Of a DNA stretch of 64,000 nucleotides, positions 9,372-60,931 are shown piece by piece (within the stretch, counting starts at the first letter, position 1; each line of letters opens with the position of its first letter). The notes under the pieces were generated by a model. That model searched no databases. It was not told the DNA's origin and saw only the letters and a list, made by a program, of their open reading frames with translations. The position numbers and the translations under genes are program-made. Location: positions 1 to 64,000 of the IMG/VR virus record IMGVR_UViG_3300032214_000715; one strand, written 5' to 3'.

Positions 9372-9426
9372 CTACTTGATTGCGTTAATAAATCTATACA
9401 GATAAATACTCATAGTACTATACACT

Positions 9427-30462: not shown

Positions 30463-31036
30463 AATTAATTACTTTGTCGGCTAATCCAAAATTAACTGAT
30501 GACTGAGCGTCCATATAGTTATCTCTAGTCATTGCTTGCTTTAATTCTTCTACACTTTTTCCGGTATTTTTTGAATATATATCTATAAGTGTATTATTCA
30601 GTCTAATCATTTCTTCCATTTGAATTTCTGCATCCCACACTGTTCCACGCGACCCGCCAGAAACAGAATGAATCATGTGTCTTGCTCGCGGCAATATAAA
30701 TCTTTTACTTTTGACGCCAGCACTCGCAAGTAAACTACCCATTGAGCAAACGCTTCCGATAGCTATGGTACTTACGTCGCAACTTATAAAATCCATAGTG
30801 TCCAATATAGCCAATCCAGCTGTAACAGACCCACCGGGACTATTAATATAGAGATGAATATCCTTATTGGAATCTTCGCTTTCTAGAAACAATAATTGAG
30901 CTACAATTAAATTTGCCATTTGATCATTAACTTCGCCTTCTAATAAAATAACTCTGTCTTTTAGAAGACGACTATAGATATCCATAGCCCTTTCGCCTTT
31001 TGAAGTGTTCTCAATTACCATTGGTACTAGTGCCAT
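30452..31036 (-). CDS. clpP: ATP-dependent Clp protease proteolytic subunit
   Basis: [21 protein letters not shown] (Ser), MIH, RDNY. Confidence 0.95.
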
Positions 31037-31641
31037 TATTTAACCTTTCTTGTTGTTGAGTTTGTAATCATTTGTGTGGGTGTGGATATCATATCGCACA
31101 CTTTAAATTTTAGTGCCTCTTCGGCGCTAAGCCAACGATCTTGCGCCGGCAATAAGTATTCTTTTATCACATCATCGTCCGCTTCAGTACAAAGACGATA
31201 ATTTTCTATCATCCTTGTGTGAGTCAACTCATATTCACGCATAGTAGCAAAAAGCTCGTGTAGTTTTCCTTCGTTATACCAACTAAATTGATGAGATAGT
31301 ATGCTTGTATTTGGAGTTAGTGTTCTACGACCCTTTGTACCGTTCATAAAAATAAGTAATCCACAACTAGCAATCTGCCCTAGACCTACTGTTTTAATCG
31401 GTATGTTGCTGTTTCTCATTACATCAATCAGAGCAAAAGTAGTTTGTAATTCTCCGCCCTCGCTACAGATCAGTAACTGTAACTCAGTCTTTTTTTTCTT
31501 AGAAACGTAGTTTTCGTACAGAATCCATTCAATAACCGGCTTTATTGACTCGTCATTTACTTCGCCCATAAACACGTATATTCCGGAATTATTCAATGCT
31601 TCAGAATGCGTGCTATCAGTGTCTTCTTGTTCAGTTGCCAT
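31036..31641 (-). CDS. clpP: Second, divergent ClpP paralog
   Basis: ICSEGG, IASCG (Ser), [13 protein letters not shown]. Confidence 0.85.
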
Positions 31642-31745
31642 AGTGTAATCCTTTGTGTATACTACATTAAAAATTTATCACGGTCAAGCGATAAGGAAAA
31701 TTTTTACTTACAGTCGTACCAATAAATATTACTGAGGAGAACATT

Positions 31746-31994
31746 ATGTTTAAGAAAATAAAAGAATTCTTTTTTGGGAAAGCAGAGCAAAAACCAGAAC
31801 AAGAGAAGATAGTACCGCCTATGATCAACGATCAAATCACCGATTCTGTTACTCAAGCAAATCCAAAGAGACCGCGTAGACCAAGAGCATTAAAAAATTC
31901 AGAAGTAAAATCTTCTCAATCAAAAAGTACCGCTCCAGCTATAAAAGCAGTTGCTTCAAAGACAGCAAAGAAAACTACAACGAATAAAAAATAA
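31746..31994 (+). CDS. Late basic hypothetical protein
   Basis: ATAAATA 31722-31728, GAGGAG SD; Lys/Ala-rich tail. Confidence 0.6.
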   Translation: MFKKIKEFFFGKAEQKPEQEKIVPPMINDQITDSVTQANPKRPRRPRALKNSEVKSSQSKSTAPAIKAVASKTAKKTTTNKK

Positions 31995-32695
31995 TGAAAA
32001 CTTCACTGGCAATAGACTTTATAAGTGATTTGAACTTGGATCACGATGATGTGTTTGACTGGTCCGACAAGCCTACTAGCTTATTTTGTGTTGTTGCCGG
32101 CGGAATAAGTTACAGTATTGAAAAAGTAAAAGAAGTACTAGATCATTTAAGTAAGCATTATCGTGGTATATTTTACATTGATGGAGCGCTAGAACACGAG
32201 TTGATTCCGGAATATGAAAGTAACATAGAGCAAATTAAGACTATCTGCGATAACATCAACAATGTGGTATTCTTACACAATCACGTTGTTGTTCTAAATG
32301 GGGTCGCGTTTGTTGCGTGTAATGGATGGTTTAGAAACAATCCTAATATTCAAACATCCGATGACATCGCGCTAGTATCAAGTCTAAAAATAGAAGATAT
32401 TGGCTATTTAACTAACACTATAAAAAATCTACAAAGTCACAGTGAGACCAAGCAAATAGTTGTTATTACAAGTTCAATACCGTCAGAGGAATTTTTATAC
32501 AAGTCCGAACACGAACTACAGGATAAAGTTGATCCAATAATAGCATTGCTAAACGATACCTCAAGTAAAGTAAAAACTTGGCTATTTGGCGGATCAAATT
32601 TATCGGTAGACGTTAAATTGAATAGCAGACGTTATGTTAATAACTCATTTAATTCTGCTCAGCCGTACTGGCCAAAAAGAATTGAAATAGATTAA
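31994..32695 (+). CDS. Degenerate metallophosphoesterase-fold protein
   Basis: ISDLNL (SDLH variant), AGGI, GALEHE in place of GNHE, WLFG. Confidence 0.6.
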   Translation: MKTSLAIDFISDLNLDHDDVFDWSDKPTSLFCVVAGGISYSIEKVKEVLDHLSKHYRGIFYIDGALEHELIPEYESNIEQIKTICDNINNVVFLHNHVVVLNGVAFVACNGWFRNNPNIQTSDDIALVSSLKIEDIGYLTNTIKNLQSHSETKQIVVITSSIPSEEFLYKSEHELQDKVDPIIALLNDTSSKVKTWLFGGSNLSVDVKLNSRRYVNNSFNSAQPYWPKRIEID

Positions 32696-32997
32696 GCTTC
32701 GCTTTCTATTTTAATTTGTAATGGATACCCTTGATTTCTTGCTTCAACTGTAACTTCTATTCCTTTTTGCTCGGCAATTTCGTAAGGAAGTACAGCCACT
32801 ACGGCACTACCACTGGTATGAATGTTTTCTGTTACTTTAATCGCCGAGTCACTAGTGTAATCAAAGTGAGACATTAAACTTTCTACTACAAATTCCATAG
32901 TAGTTATATCATCATTTACATAGATAATCTTAAACAGAGAAGGCTCTGAAATTTTTAGATTGGGTTTAATTTTTGTTTTGGTTTCTGTGTTTGCCAT
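32692..32997 (-). CDS. clpS: ClpS adaptor protein
   Basis: YVNDDITTMEFVV...IHTSGSAVV...AEQK. Confidence 0.88.
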   Translation of the reverse strand: MANTETKTKIKPNLKISEPSLFKIIYVNDDITTMEFVVESLMSHFDYTSDSAIKVTENIHTSGSAVVAVLPYEIAEQKGIEVTVEARNQGYPLQIKIESEA

Positions 32998-33044
32998 ATT
33001 GTGTTCCTATACACAGTGAGATATCTCACTGTGTATTTATTATA

Positions 33045-33479
33045 TTACTTAACGTAAGTTATAGCAATAGATTTTGGTCGGCTTTCTTCTGGAATTACAC
33101 GCTCCAAATGAATACTAAGAATTCCATTCTCTTGTGTGGCATCACGCACTTCTACGTGATCAGCAAGAGTCCAACTACGTACAAAATCACGACTGCTCAA
33201 ACCACGATGTACATAATCATAATGATCGTTACCAGTTTGTTTTCCTTCAATAGTTAGTTGCTGCTGCTTCACAGTAATGTTAATATCCCCCTGCTTAAAA
33301 CCAGCCACTGCTAATTCAATGAGCCAATTGTTTTCATCGGTTTTGATGATGTTAAAAGGGGGATAATTAGTTTGATTCGCACGTACAGCTTCTTCAAAGT
33401 GATCAAACATACGATCAAAGCCTACACCAAAGCGATGTAGTTGTGGAATATCAATAGAACGAACTTGTAGATTTGTCAT
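33045..33479 (-). CDS. Small heat shock protein Hsp20 (IbpA-like)
   Basis: GVGFDRMF, NYPPFNI, LAVAGF, HRGLSSRDF, NGILSI. Confidence 0.92.
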   Translation of the reverse strand: MTNLQVRSIDIPQLHRFGVGFDRMFDHFEEAVRANQTNYPPFNIIKTDENNWLIELAVAGFKQGDINITVKQQQLTIEGKQTGNDHYDYVHRGLSSRDFVRSWTLADHVEVRDATQENGILSIHLERVIPEESRPKSIAITYVK

Positions 33480-33614
33480 TTTATTTCTCCTATAAGCAAG
33501 AATGACTTTTGAACCGTAACCCTCTAGGGCGTTACTAATGTAGTGTGACTCATTCACACTACATTCTTATTTATCTTAACATACACTACGCAAAATAGTA
33601 TACTATTTTGGTAA

Positions 33615-33821
33615 TTAGTACATCTTTTTTGGAAGTTCCTGACTATCTAGATATTTTTTCCAGCGATTACGAGCTTTGCTCTTTGCTACTTTTTTATCTA
33701 TGCTGGGCTTTACATAAAATTCACGTTCTCGTAGTGTTTGTAGCAAACCACTATCGGCTACTTTCTTTTTGAACTTACGCATCGCAATTTCGAAATTGTC
33801 TTTTGTATTAACTACCTTCAT
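33615..33821 (-). CDS. rpsU: Ribosomal protein S21
   Basis: FEIAMRKFKKKV..SG....REFYVKPS. Confidence 0.88.
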   Translation of the reverse strand: MKVVNTKDNFEIAMRKFKKKVADSGLLQTLREREFYVKPSIDKKVAKSKARNRWKKYLDSQELPKKMY

Positions 33822-35032
33822 TGTTTCTCCAACAAAAACTTAGCGTCTTGTACTAATTCCGCTGTTATATTTATACTCTTTATCTTTTCTTTAAGATAAC
33901 TCTGTATATTGTACATATGAGGCAAAAGCACTCTTTCTATTTCACTGTGTAAGCCTCTTGCCCCAGTTTTTAGAGATAAACAATTTTCTGCTATAAGTTC
34001 TATAGCATTGTTATCAAATGAAAGTGATATTCCATCTAACTGAAATAGATACTTGTATTGATCAATATAGCTATTTTTTACATTTAACAAAATTTGAATC
34101 AATTGTTCTTTTGTCAATTCTCCAATAGACACTCTGCTGGTAAATCTTCCAGTAAATTCCGGTATCATTCCAAATTTAGTCAAGTCATCAGGAGTAACTA
34201 GTGGTAAATAATCCTGTTCTTTTACGTCAGCTTTTATTTTTGCTCCAAAGCCAATACTGTTTCCATCTACTCGTTTAGCTATGATTTCATTTAATCCAAC
34301 GAATGCTCCTCCGGCAATAAAGAGAATATTAGTAGTATCCACTTCTATCATATCGCTATTTGGGTTTTTTCGCTTGCTGCCCTGTGGCACTCTACACATA
34401 GTGCCTTCTACTAATTTAAGCAGTGCTTGTTGAACACCCTCACCGCTAACGTCACGTGTGATACTGGCACTTTCACTTTTACGAGCAACTTTGTCGATTT
34501 CGTCTATAAATACTATACCACGTTGAGCCTTGTCAACGTCTCCATCGGCGGCAGCCAATAGTCTAACAATCATACTTTCAACATCGTCGCCAACATAGCC
34601 AGCTTCAGTTAAGCTAGTAGCATCGGCCACGACAAATGGAACATCCAGATACTCGGCAACCGTTTTTGCTAACAATGTTTTTCCACTGCCAGTGGGTCCC
34701 AATACAAGAACATTACTTTTTTGTATTTTGATGTTTGAATCTTTATTGTTGATTCTCTTGTAATGATTGCTCACGGCAACACTTAGTATCATTTTGGCGT
34801 GTTCTTGCCCAATAACATAACGATCCAAGAACGATTTGATATCATCTGGATACAAACTCGTCTTTACATTTTGTAAATCGTTGATGCTATCGGACTCATC
34901 CAATAGTAACTCATTACATAGTTCAACGCAGTCATTACATATGGCTGTTTTTTCACCTACGATTAGCTTTTTTACTACACTCTTGTGTTTACCACAAAAG
35001 GAGCATTCTTGGAAATAAAGTACTTCGCTCAT
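33818..35032 (-). CDS. clpX: ClpX ATPase
   Basis: CSFC zinc domain, [23 protein letters not shown] loop, GARGL. Confidence 0.97.
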
Positions 35033-39044: not shown

Positions 39045-39245
39045 TTATTTTAACCCAAAGTGTTCTTTAATTTCTTTAGCAGTTGCTGTATCACCTTTGA
39101 ACACAGCAATCTTTACGCATTCAAACAGAATTAAGTCGGCGAACTTTTCAATATTCTCATAACCAACCAATGCTCGTTCCCTCGGTGCACCACCAATAGG
39201 AACTGCCCTAGCCTGTTCGGCAAGTTCTCTAACTAGTCCGTTCAT
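39045..39245 (-). CDS. MNERIKE-family paralog
   Basis: ELAEQA, KFADLILFEC, IKEHFGLK. Confidence 0.75.
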   Translation of the reverse strand: MNGLVRELAEQARAVPIGGAPRERALVGYENIEKFADLILFECVKIAVFKGDTATAKEIKEHFGLK

Positions 39246-39619
39246 CGTGGATCCATTCCGCCATCACTGACCACATCGCTATAAGTAGCACCGCCGCCTT
39301 CTTGAAGTTTCTTCTTTAGACGACGGATTTCAGCCTTGAGATTACGATTCTCATAGTCTGCCCAACCGGCACGTTCCTGCATCTCTGTCATTTGCTTGAC
39401 GAAGTCTCGATCACTTGGTGTTAGGTCTTCTTCAGGTGTGATGATGAATTTACCATGATCCCAATCAAAGCCCATCTGGATATTTTTTACCTTAACAGTA
39501 GGTAGTCCACCAACAGTAGAGTATGGCAGTTTGATCTTAATCACCACTTCGGGGTCTTCGTAGTGACCATCACGGTGGTGGCAATCAACAATGTGCTTTA
39601 GTTCACTTAGTTTCATCAT
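39242..39619 (-). CDS. Hypothetical protein
   Basis: 125 aa coupled ORF after GGGAGTTGA junction. Confidence 0.6.
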   Translation of the reverse strand: MMKLSELKHIVDCHHRDGHYEDPEVVIKIKLPYSTVGGLPTVKVKNIQMGFDWDHGKFIITPEEDLTPSDRDFVKQMTEMQERAGWADYENRNLKAEIRRLKKKLQEGGGATYSDVVSDGGMDPR

Positions 39620-39921
39620 TCAACTCCCGTTCTTCTTACGTTGTTGGATATAGTATTCATCCATCTTCTTTTTCCATTCTTCGGGTGTAGGATCACGAAA
39701 GTATCCTTGTGGCTTACTTGAACCACGCCCGCTTTTGAAACTATTGTATGCTGTTCTAAAACTCACGATTCAACTCCTATTCAACACTGCCTGTAGAGCA
39801 TAGACAGCATCGTGTGTAGTAAAGAGTATAACATCATTTTCAATTACTGTATAGAGGTTAGGTTCTACCTCATTGGCTTCATTTACCCGCTTTTCAACTT
39901 TTAGAACTATAGTTTCAGTTT

Positions 39922-40155
39922 TCACGATTCAACTCCAAAAAATGTTTTATGTAAGGCTTCGAGATAATCGTCTGTGCCCATATGCGAATTGCCATTGTCA
40001 ATCTTACTATAGATGCCAGCACATTCTTTCACAATCAACTCGGCGAGTTTTTCCGCAAACGCATATAATTCAGGGTTGGCAGAAATTTTCCTGTTGACTG
40101 TTTCTTCTGCCATAAACTTTGCCTGATTCGCAAGTTCCTTAATTCGTTCGTTCAT
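39922..40155 (-). CDS. MNERIKE-family paralog
   Basis: MNERIKELA, LAELIVKEC, FFGVES. Confidence 0.8.
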   Translation of the reverse strand: MNERIKELANQAKFMAEETVNRKISANPELYAFAEKLAELIVKECAGIYSKIDNGNSHMGTDDYLEALHKTFFGVES

Positions 40156-40273
40156 TTTGTTATCCTATATCCTACATACCAGAGATCAATACGGAAAAAC
40201 CAATTGCCTTTATTTTTACCAAAGCCGATTCGTAGCATACGGTCATCTTTGTCTAGTAAGATTTTTGTCAACA

Positions 40274-40492
40274 TTATAAGAACAGACCTTTTCTGTCTAC
40301 GCCAGTTTCATAGTATTCTTTTGCGGCCCCACTGTAATACATTACCTCTCCACATTGAGCACACTTATAGCGATGTAGGTCCAAGTCCACTGTGGTACTA
40401 ACAGTTTCAGACTCCCACTCACCTTCAGTTTCTTCACCAAAGCAATTTGTGGTTACCCATGTCTGTTTGGTTCTACTATGTGAGCAAGTCAT
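40274..40492 (-). CDS. Zn-ribbon hypothetical protein
   Basis: CAQC motif. Confidence 0.55.
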   Translation of the reverse strand: MTCSHSRTKQTWVTTNCFGEETEGEWESETVSTTVDLDLHRYKCAQCGEVMYYSGAAKEYYETGVDRKGLFL

Positions 40493-40770
40493 TCTTTAAC
40501 TCCGAAATGTTGTTTCAATCGTTCTACACACACATCCTGTCCATCAATAAAGGCCTTGTCTATTGCGCTGGCCTGCTCATACAGAATATCCGATTCTCCG
40601 CCTGGCCAACAAACCATAATACATTCCCGAACAATCAACTCGGCGAACTTTTCAATTCTGTCATCCCATAGTTCCACAGTTTCAACATGCTGTGGAGGAT
40701 TTGACATTAGATTTCTAGTGCTAATATGAGCACCGGCCTCTTTAGCAAGTTTCCTAATTCGTTCGTTCAT
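40489..40770 (-). CDS. MNERIKE-family paralog
   Basis: MNERIRKLA, KFAELIVREC, HFGVKE. Confidence 0.8.
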   Translation of the reverse strand: MNERIRKLAKEAGAHISTRNLMSNPPQHVETVELWDDRIEKFAELIVRECIMVCWPGGESDILYEQASAIDKAFIDGQDVCVERLKQHFGVKE

Positions 40771-40872
40771 TTGCAATCTCTTTTAATCTAAGGACAAAAT
40801 CTGTTTGTTCGTATTCACCATAAACATTAACGAGCCTTGAGGCTAACCATAGTAGAAATTCTTTATCACTCA

Positions 40873-41061
40873 TTATTCAACTCCAAAGTATTCCTTGATC
40901 ATTGGTCCAGGATATTCACCACCGTCGTGGGCATAGTTGCCAATCATAACACACTTTTTGATAATCAACTCGGCGAATTTATCCTGCCACTTGTCTCGGT
41001 CAAACGCTGGACTAAATTCCTGAGTAGCCTGTTTAGCCAGTTCTTTAATTCGTTCGTTCAT
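40873..41061 (-). CDS. MNERIKE-family paralog
   Basis: MNERIKELA, KFAELII, YFGVE. Confidence 0.8.
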   Translation of the reverse strand: MNERIKELAKQATQEFSPAFDRDKWQDKFAELIIKKCVMIGNYAHDGGEYPGPMIKEYFGVE

Positions 41062-41062
41062 A

Positions 41063-41257
41063 TCAATCATCCCTACAATTACAATCACCAGTGCCGAAAC
41101 GAAGTTCTCCGCAATATGGACAACCTATACGATAATGTGGATCTAACTCGTTGAGAACACGATAGTATTCTGTTGTGCCAACAGGGCCGCCGCAATCCAT
41201 AGCAATTGCTACATGTGAGTAGCCTTTACTCAACAGTTCCTTAATTCGTTCGTTCAT
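41063..41257 (-). CDS. Chimeric ORF: MNERIKEL N-terminus plus Zn-finger
   Basis: MNERIKELL then CPYC...CNC. Confidence 0.65.
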   Translation of the reverse strand: MNERIKELLSKGYSHVAIAMDCGGPVGTTEYYRVLNELDPHYRIGCPYCGELRFGTGDCNCRDD

Positions 41258-41430
41258 AATGTTAGACCGCCCTTCTTTTCAAGACTTGCTTGATGCTCTT
41301 GTGGACTACGATTTACACACAACCCACCATCGTAAAGCAGGGGTTGTCCACACCAAGCTAACCATTCTAACCCACTCGGAGTAAATTTAGTTCCTGTGAC
41401 ATTCCAAGCCCGCCTGAATTGTTCGTTCAT
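41254..41430 (-). CDS. 58-aa ORF starting MNEQ (below ORF-track cutoff)
   Basis: Own translation MNEQFRRAWNV...KGGLTL; ATGA overlaps both ends. Confidence 0.55.
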   Translation of the reverse strand: MNEQFRRAWNVTGTKFTPSGLEWLAWCGQPLLYDGGLCVNRSPQEHQASLEKKGGLTL

Positions 41431-41750
41431 ACCATACTCCTTCCAATCTCAGCCGCAGCCCTGACGATGGCGCGGCGTGTGGCGGCATATCCATCTTCGC
41501 CGCACTTTTCCCAGTCCTCTCTTGAGTAGCGCAGGGTGTAGAAGGGTAGGCATTTCACCGCCAGCCTGAAAGCATCGCCGTCGTCGGTGAGGGGGTTCCA
41601 AAGCGTTGGGTAGTCACTTGTTCTAGTCGGATGCCTTGACCTAAGATAGAACTCGAAAGCCGAAGGGAACAAAGGAAATCGTTTTTCAATGAAATCGTAC
41701 TTAGCCGCCTTCGCAGCGTATTCCAGCAGTTCTCTATCTGTATCAATCAT
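41427..41750 (-). CDS. Hypothetical protein, higher GC
   Basis: WNPLTDDGDAFRLAV; ends RAAAEIGRSMV. Confidence 0.65.
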   Translation of the reverse strand: MIDTDRELLEYAAKAAKYDFIEKRFPLFPSAFEFYLRSRHPTRTSDYPTLWNPLTDDGDAFRLAVKCLPFYTLRYSREDWEKCGEDGYAATRRAIVRAAAEIGRSMV

Positions 41751-41751
41751 T

Positions 41752-41946
41752 TTACTTACTCTGAATACAACGGTATTCGTTAGTTTTGAGACTCAATTGC
41801 CTAGCAGCATCATCGCACATTTCTCGTGCTGTCTTTTTGCCCATACGACCCTCTTCCATATGGAACTCCCCAATAGGTCGCCAATCGTACTTACAGACAG
41901 CAGGCACACAGGCAATCACGGTCCAAATTACAAGAATGTAGGTCAT
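41752..41946 (-). CDS. Small secreted/membrane hypothetical
   Basis: Hydrophobic N-terminus, Cys pairs. Confidence 0.55.
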   Translation of the reverse strand: MTYILVIWTVIACVPAVCKYDWRPIGEFHMEEGRMGKKTAREMCDDAARQLSLKTNEYRCIQSK

Positions 41947-42186
41947 GGTTCAATTACCTTTCCACTTACTATAGATCCAACTTGTTAATAAAGTCACGCC
42001 GGATGCTACCATAATAATACCAACAATTCCAACGGTTGCTATTAAAATGTCTATTAGAGCGCCAGCCACTTCACTCACCTCTCCACGCACTATAAATCAT
42101 CTGATAAGCACAATAGGGAATCATAAGTGTGACTCCAGTAATGGCCAATAGCCAAACGGTTATAAACACATCCATCAAAATGTTAA

Positions 42187-42321
42187 TCATTTCAGTGATC
42201 TCCTAAATTCTCTGTAAGCATCATATAGCAAGGGAATTACCAGTGACAGGAACATAGCCATAGAACCCAGCAATATAATTATCATGACTAATTGTACCAC
42301 AAAAATAAAAATGCTTTCCAT
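42187..42321 (-). CDS. Small single-TM peptide
   Basis: MESIFIFVVQLVMIIILL; coupled to upstream stop. Confidence 0.45.
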   Translation of the reverse strand: MESIFIFVVQLVMIIILLGSMAMFLSLVIPLLYDAYREFRRSLK

Positions 42322-42545
42322 TATTTTACTCCAAAATGTTCCCGAATCGCACCTTCTGCAATTCGCAATCCATCTTCCCATTCATCTTTAGAATTCATAG
42401 ATTCGTTTTGAATTGCTTGAATACATTCCTGAATAATTAGTTCAGCAAACATTTTATGATCGACCAAACGCTGGCTGTCACCACGATACCAGTAATCATG
42501 GACTTCTGAAGCCTGCTCTAATAGTTCTTGGAGTCTTTCGTTCAT
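42321..42545 (-). CDS. MNERIKE-family paralog
   Basis: MNERLQELL, MFAELIIQEC, HFGVK. Confidence 0.8.
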   Translation of the reverse strand: MNERLQELLEQASEVHDYWYRGDSQRLVDHKMFAELIIQECIQAIQNESMNSKDEWEDGLRIAEGAIREHFGVK

Positions 42546-42790
42546 AGTCCCAGTACCTTTCGTTCTTGCTCAGTAAGTTTAGCAAGGGCACGTTTACGGA
42601 GTTCACCGTTTTTGTATTCTTCCAGTTCTGTCAGATCATCCAAGATAACAATCTCTCGCTCGTAGATTTCGTCAAACTTGTTTTTGGCTTTCCAAGCATC
42701 CGCAGCTTCCTTAGTTGCCACATAGTACAGATGGTTGTGACGTTCGCCGCCGTCCCACACTTGAATGTCCCAGCATTTGATGATTTTCAT
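42542..42790 (-). CDS. Hypothetical protein
   Basis: MKIIKCWDIQ; ends ALAKLTEQERKVLGL. Confidence 0.6.
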   Translation of the reverse strand: MKIIKCWDIQVWDGGERHNHLYYVATKEAADAWKAKNKFDEIYEREIVILDDLTELEEYKNGELRKRALAKLTEQERKVLGL

Positions 42791-43044
42791 TCCGAAACTC
42801 CGAAACGCCACTTGATCATTTGACTGAATGTTAGTTGAGCATTAGTCCAAATCTTACCCTCATTATCGGTCTTTGCCTTTGTTAGATTAACCACGAGGTC
42901 TTTTTCAACAATATCAATACATTCCCTAACAATCAACTCGGCGAACTTTCTTTGTGCTTTAGTAAGGCCAGTGGGATCAAATCCGTTATATTCTGCTGAA
43001 ATGATTCCAGCCTCAACAGCAAGTTCTTTAATTCGTTCGTTCAT
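42787..43044 (-). CDS. MNERIKE-family paralog
   Basis: MNERIKELA, KFAELIVREC, RFGVSE. Confidence 0.8.
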   Translation of the reverse strand: MNERIKELAVEAGIISAEYNGFDPTGLTKAQRKFAELIVRECIDIVEKDLVVNLTKAKTDNEGKIWTNAQLTFSQMIKWRFGVSE

Positions 43045-43049
43045 CGTCT

Positions 43050-43105
43050 GCTCCTGATTTCTAACTTAGTGAATATAGTATAACAGGAAACGAAATTATT
43101 GTCAA
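43050..43105 (-). promoter_or_regulatory. Early promoter/RBS cassette copy 1
   Basis: TTGACA-17-TATACT...GGAG; 50/56 identical to 48230-48285. Confidence 0.85.
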
Positions 43106-43112
43106 GTGCTGG

Positions 43113-43583
43113 TCATTTATTACCCTGGGATACGCTACTAGCAGAACTAGAACTACTTGAACCAGAACCTGACGAAACCAATTGTAGTAGTCTAGCAGTT
43201 CCACTAGCATCGCTTTGTTGAAAGATTGCGACAAGTTTTGATTGTAGTGTTTGACCAGTATTGTCACGCCAACTGACAACCACTTGAATGTTCTTGTGTT
43301 GAGCGTTTGGTTGTGACACTGTATATCTTACACTATAAGTAGCAGATTTTCCCAGTGTGTCGGGCAAAGTTTTTTCACCTACTCCAAGTTCTGGGTCAGT
43401 CCAAGACCGTGTTCGTAGATTTTCAATAACACCTTGAGCAATGAATCCTGCTTCAGATTGTTGTTTAGCCGCTGAACTTGCGGTAAATTGAATACCCTGT
43501 AGTCTAGTCAGAGCCAACAGCCCGCCGCCGATTATGATCGTTGCGATCATAATATCAATTAGTCCTACTCCACGCTGATTCAT
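43113..43583 (-). CDS. Type IV pilin-like protein (PilV-like minor pilin)
   Basis: MNQRG/VGLIDIMIATIIIGGGLLAL prepilin class III signal; A...A...IENLR helix. Confidence 0.75.
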   Translation of the reverse strand: MNQRGVGLIDIMIATIIIGGGLLALTRLQGIQFTASSAAKQQSEAGFIAQGVIENLRTRSWTDPELGVGEKTLPDTLGKSATYSVRYTVSQPNAQHKNIQVVVSWRDNTGQTLQSKLVAIFQQSDASGTARLLQLVSSGSGSSSSSSASSVSQGNK

Positions 43584-43777
43584 TCTGAAACTCCGAAATG
43601 TTTTTTAGCAGCATTCCAACCATAGCAGAAGGCTTCCCATTCTGCTTCGTCATACCCTAGTGCTTCATGGTTTCTGGGCCTATCTCTGAGGTCTGCGGTT
43701 TCTTTAACATATTCTTCGAACATGTCTACTTGTTCTTTAGTATCCCATTCCCAACCTGGTTCGCCGTATCCCATCAC
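43580..43777 (-). CDS. Chimeric ORF with family C-terminus only
   Basis: Unrelated N-terminus, ends KKHFGVSE. Confidence 0.65.
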   Translation of the reverse strand: MMGYGEPGWEWDTKEQVDMFEEYVKETADLRDRPRNHEALGYDEAEWEAFCYGWNAAKKHFGVSE

Positions 43778-44019
43778 TTGACTCCGAAATGTTCTTTAAT
43801 CAATTGCGCCGTTTCCCATAGTGGGTCTGCTTCATGATATGAATATTCTTTGCGATTGACAATAGCCAAACATTCCCTAATAATCAAGTTAGCGAATCGT
43901 TGGGCACTGGCTTCACCTTGCCAATATACGGTAGGAGGATTACCATCAAGTGCAGGATCACCATCGTAGTGGCGAGTTCCGTGGGCTTGGCGATATAGTT
44001 CTTTCAATCTTTCGTTCAT
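43774..44019 (-). CDS. MNERIKE-family paralog
   Basis: MNERLKELY, RFANLIIREC, IKEHFGVK. Confidence 0.8.
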   Translation of the reverse strand: MNERLKELYRQAHGTRHYDGDPALDGNPPTVYWQGEASAQRFANLIIRECLAIVNRKEYSYHEADPLWETAQLIKEHFGVK

Positions 44020-44396
44020 ACTGTCTCCAATTCATCAATTTTTTCGTATGCGACAACCGCTGGTAGTAGTAAAATTGCGGCTGGGTCTTCACTTAGAACT
44101 GCCCATACTCGCAATTTATCACTAGACATATCTAGGTATTTGGCAGCATCATCATATGCGATTAGTGCTAGGATCGCATCCCGAGCCGCATTCCAAACCG
44201 CAGCCCTCGCCGCAGCCCGCCCCGTCAGCGCCAGAGCCGCATCCCAAGCCGCAATCCGAGCCGCATCATAAGCCGCATCATAAGCCGCATCATAAGCCGC
44301 ATCCCAAGCCGCATCCCAAACTTCGGGATGTGATTTTGAAGACTCCAACACGCGATCAATATGTGTCGCATTTGGCAAATGACTCCAGGCGTTCAT
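44016..44396 (-). CDS. Ala-rich protein with (W/Y)DAA tandem repeats
   Basis: 12-bp tandem units GCGGCTT(GG/AT)GAT, about 44236-44318. Confidence 0.7.
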   Translation of the reverse strand: MNAWSHLPNATHIDRVLESSKSHPEVWDAAWDAAYDAAYDAAYDAARIAAWDAALALTGRAAARAAVWNAARDAILALIAYDDAAKYLDMSSDKLRVWAVLSEDPAAILLLPAVVAYEKIDELETV

Positions 44397-44632
44397 TTTA
44401 CAAACCTACCGTCCTCTTCAATGTAAATATCAAAATGTGATTCAATATTGCTGGCAATAGCAAGTCCTGGTCCAGACAGTTTAGGTTTGTCATACTCGTA
44501 TGCGATATTGATACATTCCCTGATCAACAACTCGGCGAACTTTAGTTGAATGCGTTCATAGTAATCTGCACAGTCGGAATCAACTATTTCGTCCTGCGCC
44601 TGTTCGTAAAGTTTTATAATTCGTTCGTTCAT
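44393..44632 (-). CDS. MNERIKE-family paralog
   Basis: MNERIIKLY, KFAELLIREC; ends GRFVK. Confidence 0.78.
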   Translation of the reverse strand: MNERIIKLYEQAQDEIVDSDCADYYERIQLKFAELLIRECINIAYEYDKPKLSGPGLAIASNIESHFDIYIEEDGRFVK

Positions 44633-44645
44633 TATCAACTTTCTG

Positions 44646-44978
44646 TTAAGTATTCTCAGTTTGGCACTGCCCGTCTGGACCATAGGTACAAGCATAGACA
44701 GCAGAACTATCAGTTAGTGGCTGCTCAAAGATACGGTAGAAACAATATTGCTCCCCTTCTGTGTCAAAGAAGAACATACTACCATTGACCAACCCTGCCA
44801 TGATATTATAGAACTCATCAGTCTCACCGTAAAGGGCTTTGACTTCTGCCATGATAAACTTCCAAATTTCGTCATCTTCGGGTTTATCGTACTCTAACCC
44901 ATTGCCTACATAAACAGCAGGTTTACCCATTTGCTTCACAGCAAGACTTTGAATTTCATTCCATTGACAAACTTTCAT
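44646..44978 (-). CDS. Hypothetical protein
   Basis: Starts in ATGA overlap after FGVEE. Confidence 0.6.
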   Translation of the reverse strand: MKVCQWNEIQSLAVKQMGKPAVYVGNGLEYDKPEDDEIWKFIMAEVKALYGETDEFYNIMAGLVNGSMFFFDTEGEQYCFYRIFEQPLTDSSAVYACTYGPDGQCQTENT

Positions 44979-45232
44979 TCCTCAACTCCGAAATGTTGTT
45001 TAATGTTATCAATACATTTTTTTACGCCCCTATTATGTGCGTTAGAATGCGTACCGACTGTACCGACAAAATTAACATTACATTGCTCAACACATTCTGC
45101 CACAATGAGTTCGGCGAACTTTTTTCGGTCAAATACTGTCCGGATAGTGCTCAATCCACCAGCATTCATATCAAAGTCGCAAGGCACCTTTACCCAACAT
45201 TGGGATTCAAGTTCTTTAATTCGTTCGTTCAT
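44975..45232 (-). CDS. MNERIKE-family paralog
   Basis: MNERIKELE, KFAELIVAEC, IKQHFGVEE. Confidence 0.8.
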   Translation of the reverse strand: MNERIKELESQCWVKVPCDFDMNAGGLSTIRTVFDRKKFAELIVAECVEQCNVNFVGTVGTHSNAHNRGVKKCIDNIKQHFGVEE

Positions 45233-45468
45233 ACCATACCCTTTCCAATCTCTGCTGCGCGGATGTGCCAGGCGCACCATGAGGCTCCGACGCCGCGTTC
45301 GAGTCCAGAGTTCCGATGAGCGATCTTGTCGCACTCCTTCGCGCACTGCTCCCGCTCATCAGCCCGGACAAGGGCGGCGAAGCGTTCAAGTTGCCTGTCG
45401 AAATAGACGTCGGTGTGTTTTGCGGAAAACCCAGCCTGCTTGGCAAGTTGTCGAATTTGTTCGTTCAT
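45229..45468 (-). CDS. MNEQ-start paralog, higher GC
   Basis: FAALVRADEREQCA; ends RAAEIGKGMV like 41427. Confidence 0.72.
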   Translation of the reverse strand: MNEQIRQLAKQAGFSAKHTDVYFDRQLERFAALVRADEREQCAKECDKIAHRNSGLERGVGASWCAWHIRAAEIGKGMV

Positions 45469-45698
45469 TCCGAAACTCCGAAATGTCTGGCAATATGCTC
45501 TGCGGCGGTTAATTTGGTTTGGGGGTGTGGATAATTTACTGTGACTGCCATACATTCACTGATCAACAACTCGGCAAACTTTTCAAATTCTGAATACGAA
45601 ACAAACCGAGCCATTCCTCTCGGATCGCCATCTAATATAGCCATTCTACCGAAACGTATATTAGCCTGTTCGGCAAGTAGTTTAATTCGTTCGTTCAT
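45465..45698 (-). CDS. MNERIKE-family paralog
   Basis: MNERIKLLA, KFAELLISEC, HFGVSE. Confidence 0.8.
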   Translation of the reverse strand: MNERIKLLAEQANIRFGRMAILDGDPRGMARFVSYSEFEKFAELLISECMAVTVNYPHPQTKLTAAEHIARHFGVSE

Positions 45699-45719
45699 TC
45701 TTTAACTCCGAGATGTTGT

Positions 45720-45959
45720 TTAATCAATCCCCACTTGACGAGTACAGCCTTTGCCACATTGTTCTTGCCAACTGGTAGAACCTTGACAGTTGGTAAAGTA
45801 GCGAATGATGCCACCGTCACTGAATCGATAGACAGTACAGCCTTCGTGAGTAAACAGTTTATCCACTACAAACTCTTTGCCTACAGCAGTGCTGGTTTCA
45901 GCAGGCTTGCTACAGCCCGCCAACAGGGTGATAGCGAGGATAGTCAATACAGTTTTCAT
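45720..45959 (-). CDS. Small lipoprotein
   Basis: MKTVLTILAITLLAGC lipobox. Confidence 0.75.
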   Translation of the reverse strand: MKTVLTILAITLLAGCSKPAETSTAVGKEFVVDKLFTHEGCTVYRFSDGGIIRYFTNCQGSTSWQEQCGKGCTRQVGID

Positions 45960-46207
45960 TCTTCAACTCCAAAATGTGTTTTGATCATTGTAGCACAACT
46001 ATCAGCCGTTGCTTTAGTTTTGCGAGCCATTTCACCTGTGTTGGTGATTGTAGCCATATTAGCAACAAACTCACACTTGCCTACGCATTCTGCCACAATC
46101 AACTCAGCGAACTTTTCAAACTGCTGACTATATGAAAAAGTACCATCTTGCTCATAATGAAGTTCAAACCCAGCCTGTTCGGCTAGTTCCTTGATTCGTT
46201 CGTTCAT
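45956..46207 (-). CDS. MNERIKE-family paralog
   Basis: MNERIKELAEQAG, KFAELIVAEC, HFGVEE. Confidence 0.8.
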   Translation of the reverse strand: MNERIKELAEQAGFELHYEQDGTFSYSQQFEKFAELIVAECVGKCEFVANMATITNTGEMARKTKATADSCATMIKTHFGVEE

Positions 46208-46359
46208 TTTACAAACCTTCCCCAAATGAATTTCAGCGATAGACCATCCATAAATGCCTGCTTGAACGGTGTTAGAGGTGCCCAAATAATGTAGCCAATT
46301 ACAAGACCTTCAAGCCAAGCAATGACAACAAAGATAGCAATGGTTAGATCACTCATCAT
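46204..46359 (-). CDS. 51-aa membrane peptide ending GRFVK (below cutoff)
   Basis: Own translation MMSDLTIAIFVVIAW...FIWGRFVK; ATGA overlaps. Confidence 0.5.
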   Translation of the reverse strand: MMSDLTIAIFVVIAWLEGLVIGYIIWAPLTPFKQAFMDGLSLKFIWGRFVK

Positions 46360-46601
46360 TCAACCTCGAACAACAGATGCTCACCTTGACTACGGATGCG
46401 AACAACCTTACGACCTTCGATTCGATAACCAATACCAATAAAAGGTCCACCGCTGGGGTCAACAAACCCTAGATTGTCGTAGTCAATACGCTCTTGACCT
46501 TCTTGACCACCATAACGCCAGTATTGTAGATCACCGATAATGGTGTAAGTGTTGTCACTAATCTTTACGAATTGGTATTCAACACCATTACGATTACGCA
46601 T
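46356..46601 (-). CDS. Hypothetical protein
   Basis: MRNRNGVEYQF; FVDPSGGPFI. Confidence 0.6.
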   Translation of the reverse strand: MRNRNGVEYQFVKISDNTYTIIGDLQYWRYGGQEGQERIDYDNLGFVDPSGGPFIGIGYRIEGRKVVRIRSQGEHLLFEVE

Positions 46602-46842
46602 TTTCAACTCCAAATCTTTCTTGAATTTTCGTAACACAGTCTCTACGGAATGCGTCTTCAATTTGATTCCTGTAATCAATGTAACCAGGAGGCAAGTTTT
46701 CTACAATGTGTGTACATTCACGTACAACGTATTTCGCGAATTTCACTAATTCTGCATTAGTGAAGGTCCAACTTTGTAGCGTAGGTTGATCCTTCAACAC
46801 CTCTAACGCAAGGTCAAAAATAATGTCGTTTTCCTTGTCCAT
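46594..46842 (-). CDS. Divergent MNERIKE-family paralog
   Basis: KFAKYVVREC, RFGVENA. Confidence 0.7.
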   Translation of the reverse strand: MDKENDIIFDLALEVLKDQPTLQSWTFTNAELVKFAKYVVRECTHIVENLPPGYIDYRNQIEDAFRRDCVTKIQERFGVENA

Positions 46843-47633: not shown

Positions 47634-47686
47634 ACTCCGTTTTCTGACTATGAATACAGTATATCAAATACCGTATTATTTGTCAA
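47634..47686 (-). promoter_or_regulatory. Early promoter/RBS cassette copy 2 (diverged)
   Basis: TTGACA-17-TATACTGTATTCATAGTCAGAAAACGGAG. Confidence 0.8.
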
Positions 47687-48229: not shown

Positions 48230-48285
48230 GCTCCTGTTTTCTAACTCAGTGAATGCAGTATATCAGGAAACGAATTTATTGTCAA
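48230..48285 (-). promoter_or_regulatory. Early promoter/RBS cassette copy 3
   Basis: TTGACA-17-TATACT...GGAG. Confidence 0.85.
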
Positions 48286-49037
48286 ACTATTTGTAACTCT
48301 TTTGATAAGTCTGGAATATCAAAAATCCATTGTTCAAGCATGTATTCGCTATAGTAGTCAAATGGCATGTAAAAGTAGCCCGCATCGCCCCAGTTTTTCC
48401 CAAAACTGTTCTCAACGATAAACACTTTTTTGGAACTGTCGTATCCAACTAATAACACCGCGTGACCTTCTGATGATCCTACATCTTCGGTTATTATTGA
48501 ACGCTCTTCGGTCAAATCGTAAAATGATTCAAAAACTTCAATGCCAGAAACAACAGGATAATAATTATTTATGGCATCTATTGCGTCCGCGATACTGACC
48601 AATCGTTCATATTTAGTAATTTGTCTATGTTTTGCCTCAGCGTATGCTTCATCGCTTGGTTTAGCAAACAAATTGTTTAATGTATATGGCCAAATAGATT
48701 CTTTACACACTCCGTATGTTTTTAAGCCACGCAGACCACTTTTGATGCTGGCCCCACTGTCCCAAGTTACAGTGTCTTCGTATATTCGTGCGTTGTAATA
48801 TACAAACATTCTACTAAGTTCGGTATAGTGTTCTGGATATAAACGTTGAGTCATTAATTCATACGCACTCACCAACGCATTTCCGGTACAACTGCCAACT
48901 TGTTGTTGATTCTCAATCAACATTCCCCATTGACGCAAATCAATCGCATCGGCGGATTGTTTTCCAGAATTAGAATATATGTAATTGTTAATATCCGGAT
49001 CGCTGCTCTTGTATCTTGAAGTTTTTAAAATATTCAT
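48282..49037 (-). CDS. Papain-like cysteine protease (C1A)
   Basis: NQQQVGSCTG (Cys), GHAVLLVGY (His), ENSFG..WG..GY (Asn). Confidence 0.92.
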   Translation of the reverse strand: MNILKTSRYKSSDPDINNYIYSNSGKQSADAIDLRQWGMLIENQQQVGSCTGNALVSAYELMTQRLYPEHYTELSRMFVYYNARIYEDTVTWDSGASIKSGLRGLKTYGVCKESIWPYTLNNLFAKPSDEAYAEAKHRQITKYERLVSIADAIDAINNYYPVVSGIEVFESFYDLTEERSIITEDVGSSEGHAVLLVGYDSSKKVFIVENSFGKNWGDAGYFYMPFDYYSEYMLEQWIFDIPDLSKELQIV

Positions 49038-53459: not shown

Positions 53460-54194
53460 TTACATCAGACTGATGTTTTCTTTTTGTGTTTCTTTAGAAA
53501 ATACCGCTAACTGAGTTCTGTTACGAACTTTGTGCTTCTTTAGCAATGCGCTCATGTGTAATTTAACAGTGCTCTCACTTATGTTTAACATCTTGGCAAT
53601 AATCTTGTTACTGACGCCGCGATTGGCCACAAGATTAAAAATCTGACGCTGACGAGGAGTCAGATTAATAGTATTTTTAGATTCGTTGCTTTTTTTCTTT
53701 CGTGACAAAATTTCTTGTACTTGCGAAGGAATCGTAGTATCATTATTAATGATTGCTCGTAAAGACTTTGCGATTTCATCGTCACTAAACCCATCACCTG
53801 TTCTCAGACCAATGAATGAAACCATTGGCAAAGACATTACTTCTTTAATGTACTCGGCGGGTGTTTTTGTTCCCACCAAAATAACAATTTTTGTCTTACG
53901 TTGAACAAAAGCTCCGTTTTCGTCGCGAACTAGCGTACAAGTAAGAAGCGTGTTGATCGTATTAAGTAGAGCAAAAATATCAACATTGTTGACATGATAT
54001 AGCTGCTCCAAGTCAACACTGATATAATCACAGTAAAAATCTTCTTTGCTAAGTAGCGGTAACAGTTCCTTTACTCCGTCTAAAGAAACAAATTCTATTG
54101 GAAATTCTTTTACTAATTTGTCATGTAGACATTGCCCTTGACTAGGATTAATGTCTGGGCAAATTGTAATCATAATTTTGTTATCTTGTGTCAT
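53460..54194 (-). CDS. LuxR-family transcriptional regulator with receiver-like N-domain
   Basis: LTPRQRQIF...SNKIIAKMLNISESTVKLHMS...RNRTQLA. Confidence 0.88.
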   Translation of the reverse strand: MTQDNKIMITICPDINPSQGQCLHDKLVKEFPIEFVSLDGVKELLPLLSKEDFYCDYISVDLEQLYHVNNVDIFALLNTINTLLTCTLVRDENGAFVQRKTKIVILVGTKTPAEYIKEVMSLPMVSFIGLRTGDGFSDDEIAKSLRAIINNDTTIPSQVQEILSRKKKSNESKNTINLTPRQRQIFNLVANRGVSNKIIAKMLNISESTVKLHMSALLKKHKVRNRTQLAVFSKETQKENISLM

Positions 54195-54358
54195 GCTGTA
54201 CTCCCTTGTTTTGTGATGTGCTAAGTATATATGATTATTGTCACTGTGACTAGATATGCCCTGGTACAATATAGACTACAGTAGTAGTACTATTTTTGAC
54301 CAAAAGTAATCTGGTGGCTTATTTTAGTTACGAATAACTGAAGAAAAATTATATAGCG

Positions 54359-60841: not shown

Positions 60842-60931
60842 TGGCGGATAGTGTGAGATTCGAACTCACGATAGAATTTCTCCTATGACGGTTTAGTAGA
60901 CCGTTGGTTTCAGCCGCTCACCCAACTATCC
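60842..60931 (-). tRNA. tRNA-Ser, anticodon ACU, class II
   Basis: GGATAGT/ACTATCC acceptor, G73-CCA, ACGGT-CTACTAA-ACCGT, long variable arm, GTGAG-TTCGAAT-CTCAC. Confidence 0.9.

Follow-up and report, generated by a model that had tools for sequence, protein, structure and literature searches.

In a freshwater jumbo phage, a run of small early genes shares conserved start, middle and end sequences that are best explained, with fairly good confidence, as recombination joints, the end sequence being also the ribosome-binding site of the next gene, so that genes and half-genes would be swapped between phages and stay translatable. The idea resembles the linker shuffling already known from phages; however, neither this form of it nor the very large gene family involved has been described. 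The analysed window is a stretch of 64,000 nucleotides (positions 1 to 64,000 of the IMG/VR record IMGVR_UViG_3300032214_000715), in which the array occupies positions 39045-46842, all on the minus strand. It holds 12 full and 5 partial members of one small-protein family (62-93 aa) with three anchors, MNERIKELA, KFAELIVxEC and HFGV(E)E-stop, and unrelated genes lie between them. All the evidence is computational, without any expression, ribosome-profiling or recombination experiment.

The initial annotation had described about 15 small paralogs keeping three anchors around hypervariable segments, with the GGAG of the FGV codons as the Shine-Dalgarno (SD) site of the next gene, ORFs carrying a single anchor, and unrelated pilin, lipoprotein and AAWDAA genes in between, and this observation was confirmed. 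The word ATGAACGAACGAATT occurs 10 times in the 239-kb record, always on the minus strand, with 8 copies in the region (starts at 40155, 40770, 41061, 41257, 43044, 44632, 45232 and 45698), whereas about 0.0004 would be expected by chance, and CATTTCGGAGTT occurs 7 times, all on the minus strand. A repeat search returned three direct-repeat families in register: the N-anchor (13 copies in the array), the central anchor (11) and the C-anchor (11-12). As a correction to the earlier description, three more family copies lie outside the window, at 85109-86149 of the same record. The features of the region, together with the promoter that heads it, are as follows:

39045-39245 (minus): family member, 66 aa (MNGLVRELA / KFADLILFEC / HFGLK-stop), last of the array, with no coupled downstream gene
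39922-40155 (minus): family member, 77 aa; its C-anchor (FFGVES, GTGA) couples to the 51-aa gene at 39770-39925, and its stop is the downstream end of the 99.3% block shared with the relatives L082-L089
40489-40770 (minus): family member, 93 aa; HFGVKE-ATGA couples to the 72-aa CxxC protein at 40274-40492
40873-41061 (minus): family member, 62 aa; its FGV codons (40887) are the upstream end of the 966-bp block shared with relatives
41063-41257 (minus): 64-aa ORF with the N-anchor only, flanked by two N-anchor repeats; it sits elsewhere in relatives (L082 5932-6132, 96.5% identity)
41254-41430 (minus): 58-aa ORF with only a partial N-anchor (MNEQ), preceded by the type-2 junction ...IGRSMV-ATGA
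42321-42545 (minus): family member, 74 aa
42787-43044 (minus): family member, 85 aa, first gene after the internal promoter; RFGVSE-ATGA couples to the 82-aa gene at 42542-42790
43077-43105 (minus): sigma-70-like promoter (TTGACA, 17 nt, TGnTATACT) with a conserved leader, one copy of a cassette found 33 times in the genome
43113-43583 (minus): cargo, PilV-like minor-pilin protein, 156 aa, starting in the ATGA of the preceding C-anchor
43580-43777 (minus): 65-aa ORF with the C-anchor only, found at 99-100% identity inside metagenome contigs whose flanks are unlike the window
43774-44019 (minus): family member, 81 aa; its N-half is shared with a gene of the contig L079, its C-half is not
44016-44396 (minus): cargo, AAWDAA-repeat protein, 126 aa, with a 12-nt periodic repeat
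44393-44632 (minus): family member, 79 aa, with a degenerate C-anchor and the type-3 junction (GRFVK-ATGA); its C-half recurs fused to a different N-half in L082/L084/L086, with the switch at KFAEL (44540)
44646-44978 (minus): cargo, 110-aa protein with no family hit, starting in the ATGA of the preceding C-anchor
44975-45232 (minus): family member, 85 aa; its N-half is nearly identical to the paralog at 85109-85339, its C-half is unrelated
45229-45468 (minus): 79-aa ORF with the N-anchor and a variant centre (RFAALV), ending in the type-2 junction
45465-45698 (minus): family member, 77 aa
45695-45721 (minus): non-coding remnant of a C-anchor (reads KQHLGVKE-stop) downstream of the lipoprotein gene, supplying GGAG and ATGA to the next gene
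45720-45959 (minus): cargo, lipoprotein, 79 aa (LAGC lipobox, borderline DUF4884 hit), a cassette bounded by GGAGTT on both sides, which follows a different anchor in the relatives L094/L097
45956-46207 (minus): family member, 83 aa, the one modelled with AlphaFold2
46594-46842 (minus): family member, 82 aa, with a degenerate N-anchor (MDKEND)
47658-47686 (minus): sigma-70-like promoter that heads the roughly 4.5-kb unit running into the array

Regarding the cargo genes, the AAWDAA-repeat protein was confirmed, while the pilin annotated initially is PilV-like but scores 40.2 bits against the NCBIfam TIGR02523 cut-off of 52.2; the match nevertheless covers profile positions 1-128 of 139, and no Pfam hit was found, so its membership of the type IV minor pilins PilV is neither established nor excluded by this score. 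The paralogs themselves belong to a very large and unannotated family, comprising 8065 clusters at 50% identity and forming arrays of up to 14 copies in other viral contigs. Seven paralogs had no Pfam hit above cut-off and no PHROG hit, the 120 listed homologues all lack Pfam domains and are named hypothetical, and the ESM Atlas neighbours are all unnamed viral clusters. The AlphaFold2 model (pLDDT 87.6) places the three anchors on three predicted helices; however, no informative fold match was found and the analysis assigned no function to the proteins. It was also proposed initially that the paralogs may be anti-defence or host-binding proteins, which is not supported but only untested.

The C-anchor has the geometry of a translational coupling site. 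In the array, 10 of 13 C-anchors are followed by an overlapped start (ATGA, GTGA or TAATG), with a constant spacing of 7 nt between GGAG and the start codon, and GGAG, 7 nt and then ATG were found at 12 junctions; coupling itself was not measured. Among 205 family ORFs from about 80 viral contigs, the Gly codon of FGV is GGA in 94% and GGG in 5%, compared to 28% GGA among Gly codons elsewhere in the same genes, while the third position of the neighbouring Phe codon is nearly free (53% TTC, 47% TTT). The stop codon is TGA in 80%, and the overlap is ATGA in 75%, with a further 5% GTGA/TTGA and 10% TAATG. The overlapped start opens an ORF of at least 40 codons in 144 of 164 cases. In addition, non-GGA codons make up 4% where a coupled ORF exists and 16% where none is found (Fisher p = 0.024), although C-anchors at the end of an operon still mostly use GGA. 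Regarding transcription, only one strong promoter lies inside the array (43105), others being located at 47686 and 48285, and terminator-like sites are no more frequent than in shuffled sequence; in this view, inserted genes would need a ribosome-binding site but no promoter.

The N- and central anchors also keep their synonymous sites against the local codon bias, as seen for CGA (Arg, 88% in the anchor against 18% in the background), AAC (Asn, 84% against 37%), CTT (Leu, 74% against 17%), AAG (Lys, 81% against 34%), GCC (Ala, 72% against 21%) and GAG (Glu, 77% against 26%). However, this conservation is only moderate at the central anchor (66-86%) and could reflect instead an unknown RNA- or DNA-level signal. 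Anchor identity within a contig equals that between contigs (0.77 against 0.76-0.77).

Two outcomes had been named in advance as fatal to the recombination reading, namely a static array content and breakpoints falling at random in relatives rather than at anchors, and neither was observed. Relatives from independent freshwater assemblies, which are metagenome contigs and not isolates, carry different gene content and order, and 19 of 22 distinct homology-block ends lie in anchors that cover 14% of the region, the other 3 lying at ATGA gene junctions. Since family members are related by descent and block ends are partly shared events, the binomial p-values are overstated; moreover, local alignments tend to run into conserved anchors, which sharpens the apparent clustering, and selection for intact genes after random breakage would also enrich breakpoints there, as the anchors lie at gene ends and at one conserved protein position. 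A 966-bp block at 99.3% identity, shared with L082-L089, runs from one FGV (40887) to the next C-anchor stop (39922), and L094 and L097 join window blocks from 44.4, 45.9, 39.9 and 42.3 kb in a different order. A cargo gene also moves between anchors, as the lipoprotein gene follows a different C-anchor in L094 and L097 than in the window, with the crossover upstream of it lying within GGAGTT. Near-identical modules bounded by anchors were found, as well, inside freshwater metagenome contigs whose flanks are unlike the window.

The N- and C-halves reassort across the family: 18 gene pairs have one half at least 70% identical and the other below 30%, while only 4 pairs have both halves at least 70% identical, and the gene of the viral contig L052 is an exact chimera of two adjacent genes of the contig L042, joined at KFAELIV. 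In addition, 42 unrelated, non-family ORFs end in the grafted GGAGTTGAAGAATGA tail (...GVEE-stop). Of 165 members, 152 have their best match in another contig and not in their own, as do 13 of 16 in this genome, so they are not recent tandem duplicates.

Taken together, the region is interpreted as an early, polycistronic, hyperplastic segment built around a very large, unannotated family of small proteins predicted to be helical. In this interpretation, the gene-to-gene junction is a conserved nucleotide module, GGAG, a 7-nt spacer and an ATGA stop/start overlap, often followed by ACGAACGAATT, in which the last codons of one gene (FGVEE-stop) are the SD site of the next one and the first codons of many genes (MNERI) are the other half of the module, while a third conserved stretch (KFAELIVxEC) lies in mid-gene. 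These three short stretches would serve as sites of homologous recombination within and between co-infecting phages, probably through the phage's own RecA/UvsX-like enzyme, a RecA-like gene being located at 225351-226106. Exchange at the C- or N-anchors would move whole genes, including unrelated cargo, into an operon with a ready ribosome-binding site, whereas exchange at the central anchor would recombine N- and C-halves into new chimeric proteins. The sequence comparisons demonstrate the conservation of the anchors, the synonymous-site constraint, the coupling geometry, the position of breakpoints at anchors and the reassortment of halves, whereas actual translational coupling, homologous recombination as the enzymatic route and a role of the family in early host takeover or counter-defence are inferences drawn from them. 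The reading first put forward, of anchors acting as short homology arms and portable translation-coupling sites in an integrase-free cassette array, is thus supported; the junction as a portable translation signal rests on the synonymous-site statistics and the grafted tails, but the claim that any inserted cargo is expressed at once has no expression data behind it, and the analysis does not separate anchors selected for shuffling from anchors merely used by it. The absence of an integrase holds for the 239 kb available, which is 68% of the genome, where no tyrosine or serine recombinase and no reverse transcriptase were found.

An ordinary tandem paralog family, arisen by local duplication and divergence, with termini conserved because the protein needs them, ATGA overlaps as normal gene packing and incidental shuffling, is considered unlikely. 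The mapping of the anchors to the three predicted helices makes it plausible that the protein needs them, ATGA overlaps are common in phages, and one pair of paralogs in this genome is 62% identical to each other. However, synonymous sites in all three anchors are conserved against the genes' own codon bias, most members are closest to a gene in another contig, unrelated ORFs carry the grafted tail, halves reassort independently, and the GGAGTTGA motif recurs in another reading frame at non-family junctions, at 39777 and 39627.

It is similarly doubtful that the anchors are recognition sites for a dedicated enzyme, such as a site-specific recombinase, a homing endonuclease or another targeted diversity system, although the nucleotide consensus is the same in all contigs and not genome-specific, as expected for a recognition site, and the central and C-anchors share a loosely similar core (TTCG..GAGTTGA..GAATG). 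Against this reading, the enzyme searches were negative, which is weak evidence in a record only 68% complete, crossovers occur at three different anchors and at varying points within them, and no large gene is consistently linked to the arrays, though this was seen only informally. Even less likely is an artefact in which metagenome assemblers joined different phages at the short repeated anchors. The relatives are all short contigs of 1-8.5 kb and the anchors are repeats of 15-30 nt; nevertheless, the L082-type arrangement recurs in at least seven assemblies from different samples and pipelines (JGI and ENA), the L094 arrangement recurs in L097 from another archive, the window's own order is matched at 100% by Logan contigs, and chimeric genes such as the L052 gene lie in long viral contigs (114 kb). 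The exact repeats are also shorter than typical final assembly k-mers.

Comparing the array with known systems, a diversity-generating retroelement was not supported, as no RVT_1 match was found in the 239 kb available and the variable segments differ in length and in their whole sequence. The T4 internal-protein (IP) locus also holds small, highly variable phage proteins in a plastic locus, sharing a conserved N-terminal decapeptide with an (I/L)xE motif for capsid targeting, a resemblance that was not tested; here, with no virion data existing, the centre and the C-terminus are conserved as well, the N-anchor is modelled as part of the fold, and the genes lie behind sigma-70-type early promoters. 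In integron gene-cassette arrays, promoterless cassettes of unrelated genes likewise lie in one orientation, are expressed from an upstream promoter and vary between relatives. However, no PF00589 or PF00239 match was found in the 239-kb record, which is 68% complete, most genes overlap by 4 nt, which leaves no room for attC-type structured sites, and the joints are direct repeats in coding sequence, used by homology.

[quoted passage not shown] In the PeSL (promoter-early stem-loop) cassettes of T4-type phages (Arbiol et al. 2010, PMC2839356; Comeau et al. 2014, PMC4122927), short conserved regulatory modules are repeated through a hyperplastic region of small non-essential genes, recombination between them inserts, deletes and replaces the flanked genes, the moved gene brings or finds its expression signal, and exchange lands in acceptable places. 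The array shares with them the changes between close relatives bounded by the repeated element, as the lipoprotein and 64-aa cassettes occupy different positions in relatives. The genome, in which no T4-type capsid or portal gene was detected, has in the promoter-leader cassette repeated 33 times a nearer PeSL analogue, although no stem-loop was looked for in it. PeSLs are intergenic, about 100 bp long, and carry transcription signals (a promoter plus a terminator), neither of which is held by the anchors; instead, the joints described here are 15-30 nt long, lie inside coding sequence, at the start, middle and end of a paralog family, and carry a translation signal (SD plus a stop/start overlap), while a mid-gene anchor also shuffles protein halves.

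The initial annotation's observation was confirmed by the analysis of the region 39045-46842 of the window, where all genes lie on the minus strand and are tightly packed. The exact 15-mer ATGAACGAACGAATT occurs 10 times in the 239-kb record, always on the minus strand and with eight copies in the region, while CATTTCGGAGTT occurs 7 times, also all on the minus strand. In addition, a repeat search recovered three direct-repeat families in register: the N-anchor, the central anchor (11 copies) and the C-anchor (11-12 copies). Twelve genes were counted with all three anchors, besides partial forms, which comprise two ORFs with only the N-anchor, one with the N-anchor and a variant centre, one with only the C-anchor and one non-coding C-anchor remnant. 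Unrelated genes lie between them, namely a PilV-like protein, a lipoprotein with a LAGC lipobox, an AAWDAA-repeat protein and several small proteins with no family hit. Three further paralogs lie outside the window, at 85109-86149 of the same record, where they cluster with an unrelated 84-aa CxxC protein that ends in NGVEE-stop; the paralog at 85109-85339 shares its N-half with the window gene 44975-45232 but not its C-half.

Regarding the context, the window is the first 64 kb of this linear IMG/VR virus record, which comes from freshwater and is estimated to be 68% complete. Searches for a T4-type affiliation gave no Gp23 or T4-portal match, although the record is incomplete and the named control genomes hold no phage. 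The surrounding features are as follows:

30452-31641, two ClpP-like genes, part of a phage-encoded proteostasis set spanning 30452-35032
about 32692-32997, ClpS, of the same set
33045-33557, HSP20, of the same set
about 33615-33821, ribosomal protein S21, of the same set
33818-35032, ClpX-like ATPase, of the same set
41950-42320, minus strand, a stretch of about 370 nt left empty by one gene caller, holding two or three short hydrophobic ORFs of 39-46 aa that are also called in the relative L094, a contig from another sample
43113-43583, minus strand, phage-encoded PilV-like minor pilin, whose match covers nearly the whole TIGR02523 profile but scores 40 bits, below the cut-off of 52; it hints at a host with type IV pili
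53460-54269 and 48282-49037, both minus strand, a GerE/sigma-70 region-4-like protein and a papain-like (C1) peptidase, just upstream of the array
60842-60931, minus strand, a 90-nt tRNA-Ser called by ARAGORN with anticodon ACT, which is unusual for Ser

Strong sigma-70-like promoters with an extended -10 lie on the minus strand at 48285, 47686 and 43105 (48257-48285, 47658-47686 and 43077-43105). They belong to a conserved promoter-leader cassette (TTGACAATAAAT..TGnTATACT, then a leader GTATTCA..GTTAGAAAACAGGAGC and ATG) that is present 33 times in the record, always on the minus strand, the 30 further copies including those at 64297, 67696, 68258, 84528, 86653, 138211 and 223721. This cassette is the genome's nearer analogue of T4-type early-promoter cassettes, but no stem-loop was looked for in it. 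About 18 genes (47628 to 43113) lie between the promoters at 47686 and 43105; the array is therefore polycistronic and probably early, the timing being an inference.

The family is very large and undescribed, as a profile of the 12 paralogs finds 8065 clusters (50%-identity representatives) at E <= 0.001 and 1069 at E <= 1e-10. The listed homologues have no Pfam domain and no informative name, searches of Pfam and PHROGs with the paralogs gave nothing, and the ESM Atlas neighbours are all unnamed viral clusters. GenBank phages hold essentially none: a DNA search with the whole region gave only a 47-nt chance-level hit and a tblastn with one member gave a single weak hit, so no cultured relative is available. 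Literature searches for a description of this family, or of arrays with conserved termini, found nothing relevant. Meanwhile, at least 153 stretches in IMG/VR encode relatives, with arrays reaching 14 copies within 20 kb, and the same MNERIKELA / KFAELIVREC / HFGVEE-stop pattern recurs in them.

As seen in the sequence, the C-anchor doubles as the ribosome-binding site of the next gene. In the array, GGAG is followed after exactly 7 nt by ATG or GTG at 12 junctions, and each of these starts opens an ORF of 39-156 codons. When 205 non-identical family ORFs from about 80 contigs were examined, the Gly codon of FGV was GGA in 193, GGG in 11 and GGT in 1, whereas GGA is 28% of Gly codons elsewhere in the same genes, and the adjacent Phe third position is nearly free (108 TTC, 97 TTT). 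The stop is TGA in 80%, and 153 ORFs end in an ATGA overlap, 11 in GTGA/TTGA and 21 in TAATG, the overlapped start opening at least 40 codons in 144 of 164 cases. Non-GGA codons make up 4% where a coupled ORF follows and 16% where none is found (p = 0.024). Moreover, the same GGAGTTGA word also serves junctions of non-family genes in another reading frame, at 39777 and 39627. The unit under selection is therefore a nucleotide signal, not only a peptide.

The other two anchors are also conserved at the nucleotide level, and the central anchor thus keeps codons that are minor in these genes.

Codon use in the N- and central anchors compared with the background (anchor; codon; in anchor; background)
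N-anchor; AAC (Asn); 84%; 37%
N-anchor; CGA (Arg); 88%; 18%
N-anchor; CTT (Leu); 74%; 17%
Central; AAG (Lys); 81%; 34%
Central; TTC (Phe); 67%; 25%
Central; GCC (Ala); 72%; 21%
Central; GAG (Glu); 77%; 26%
Central; TTG (Leu); 72%; 29%

Comparing their consensus sequences, the central anchor (AAGTTCGCCGAGTTGATTGTTCGGGAATGT) and the C-anchor (CATTTCGGAGTTGAAGAATGA) share TTCG..GAGTTGA..GAATG in different reading frames, which could be chance or a trace of common origin and was not tested statistically.

Exact-protein look-ups gave contigs from other samples that share blocks with the window (L082-L090, L094 and L097), and in these close relatives the breakpoints fall at the anchors. A 966-bp block at 99.2-99.3% identity is common to L082-L084 and L086-L089, with shorter versions at 98.5-98.9% in L085 and L090; it runs from the FGV codons of the 62-aa gene (40887) to the stop of the 77-aa gene (39922), and everything outside it differs. 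In L085 the block stops in the N-anchor (40130), then the N-half of the 77-aa gene reappears fused to another C-half, with the switch at KEC (40020). An L082 gene combines a different N-half with the C-half of the 79-aa gene, with the switch at KFAEL (44540), and the 64-aa gene, flanked by two N-anchors in the window, sits elsewhere in L082. L094 and L097 place the lipoprotein gene after the 65-aa gene instead of the 83-aa gene, then continuing with blocks that lie at 39.9 and 42.3 kb in the window. At the upstream lipoprotein joint, L094 matches one window context up to CATTTCGGAGTT and the other from GGAGTTGAAGAATGA onward, and the crossover is therefore within GGAGTT; downstream, identity ends at the GGAGTT of the non-coding anchor remnant. 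Of 22 distinct internal block ends, 19 lie within 1 nt of predefined anchors that cover 14% of the region (nominal P = 6e-14), and the other 3 are at ATGA gene junctions. Freshwater metagenome contigs add near-identical modules bounded by anchors, with unlike flanks, at 43579-43797, 45693-45977, 40621-40887, 41058-41234 and 44390-44543. Only such long, near-identical pieces were used, as most joints in the metagenome alignments had sides of 20-35 nt that come from other family members matching only the anchors, and these were not counted as recombination events.

The same process runs through the whole family. Among 125 three-anchor genes (7750 pairs), 18 pairs have one half at least 70% identical and the other below 30%, whereas only 4 pairs have both halves at least 70% identical. 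Considering two viral contigs, L052 and L042, one L052 gene (8795-9035) is an exact chimera of two adjacent L042 genes (9065-9577), with the N-half of the downstream gene joined to the C-half of the upstream one at KFAELIV, an order expected from unequal crossing-over or from a circle excised between two central anchors. Furthermore, 42 ORFs with no relation to the family end in ...GVEE-stop, ...GVKE-stop or similar, which is the grafted junction, often followed by ACGAACGAATT, while N-anchor grafts on unrelated proteins are rarer, about 3 in 120. The HFGV junction is not the only portable one, as two other types, ...AAEIG(R/K)(S/G)MV-ATGA (41421-41456 and 45223-45258) and ...GRFVK-ATGA (44390-44410 and 46201-46221), are each shared by unrelated genes and followed by ATGAACG.

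Random breakpoints and static array content had been named at the outset as observations that would speak against the initial annotation, and neither was seen in the relatives. Its mechanistic reading, in which the anchors act as short homology arms and portable translation-coupling sites, is supported. The simplest reading is general homologous recombination at short conserved stretches, and a RecA/UvsX-like gene is present. The anchor conservation, the breakpoints and the reassorted halves come directly from sequence comparison, whereas the recombination route is a reading of these data, and neither translation nor recombination was measured. Selection for intact genes after random breakage would also favour these positions, alignments run into conserved anchors, and neither the events nor the sequences are independent, so that the p-values are nominal.

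Other explanations fit the data less well. Concerted evolution within a genome was rejected, because anchor identity within a contig equals that between contigs (0.77 against 0.76-0.77), indicating one consensus for the whole family and not homogenisation genome by genome. The arrays are not recent local duplications, as 152 of 165 members in multi-copy contigs have their best protein match in another contig. Diversity-generating retroelement or integron mechanisms were also rejected, since no integrase, resolvase or reverse transcriptase is found in the available 239 kb and the expected site anatomy is lacking. The sequencing runs found are short-read assemblies. Assembly chimeras are unlikely, because the same arrangements recur in several independent assemblies.

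Concerning the proteins, AlphaFold2 with 100 homologues gives a confident model (pLDDT 87.6), with a short N-terminal helix (residues 3-11), a variable loop (12-26) and a helical hairpin (27-55 and 58-79). Each anchor therefore sits in a predicted helix, and the variable parts are the loop and the helix surfaces. Cys41 is invariant, whereas Glu40, His78, Phe79, Gly80 and Val81 are nearly invariant. No solved or annotated fold matches the model, as the PDB search gave nothing below E = 2 and BFVD gave only the family's own uncharacterised members, and no function could be assigned. Early promoters, small size, restriction to viruses and reassorting halves fit a host-takeover or counter-defence role, but this is inference only.

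A more far-reaching possibility, not excluded by the evidence but considered rather unlikely, is that the anchors are not just conserved protein ends that recombination happens to use. They would form a pan-phage exchange standard, a nucleotide module of SD, stop/start overlap and conserved first codons plus a mid-gene joint, kept at synonymous sites across thousands of freshwater phage lineages. In this view, the module would persist because it lets any phage in the pool take up, express and recombine early genes and half-genes, and exchange might run through excised mini-circles that each carry a complete chimeric gene with its own ribosome-binding site. That would amount to a combinatorial diversity system, for a counter-defence or host-takeover protein family, that needs no dedicated enzyme.

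These findings bear on phage evolution in more than one way. The last residues of a protein family can be fixed partly by the needs of the neighbouring gene's ribosome-binding site, a constraint that has been overlooked. The analysis also points to an unstudied, virus-only protein family of at least 8000 clusters with no annotation and with freely reassorting halves, a pattern typical of proteins in an arms race. In practical terms, the junction is a natural, compact and portable coupling element.

Modular evolution of phages through short homologous linkers has been proposed for a long time, but clear examples are few, and it has been noted that most mosaic joints show no such sequence (PMC3029335). 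Here the linkers are explicit, numerous and testable, and they would also work as the translation signal, explaining how a promoterless gene without its own RBS can work wherever it lands. The kind of process is known. General homologous recombination at short conserved stretches has been proposed for the PeSL (promoter-early stem-loop) cassettes of T4-type phages (PMC2839356), whose mini-circles were examined by outward-facing PCR, and for lambdoid boundary sequences. Compared to this linker- or PeSL-type modular shuffling, the form is new, having coding anchors, a translation signal rather than a transcription signal, an extra mid-gene joint and a very large unannotated family.
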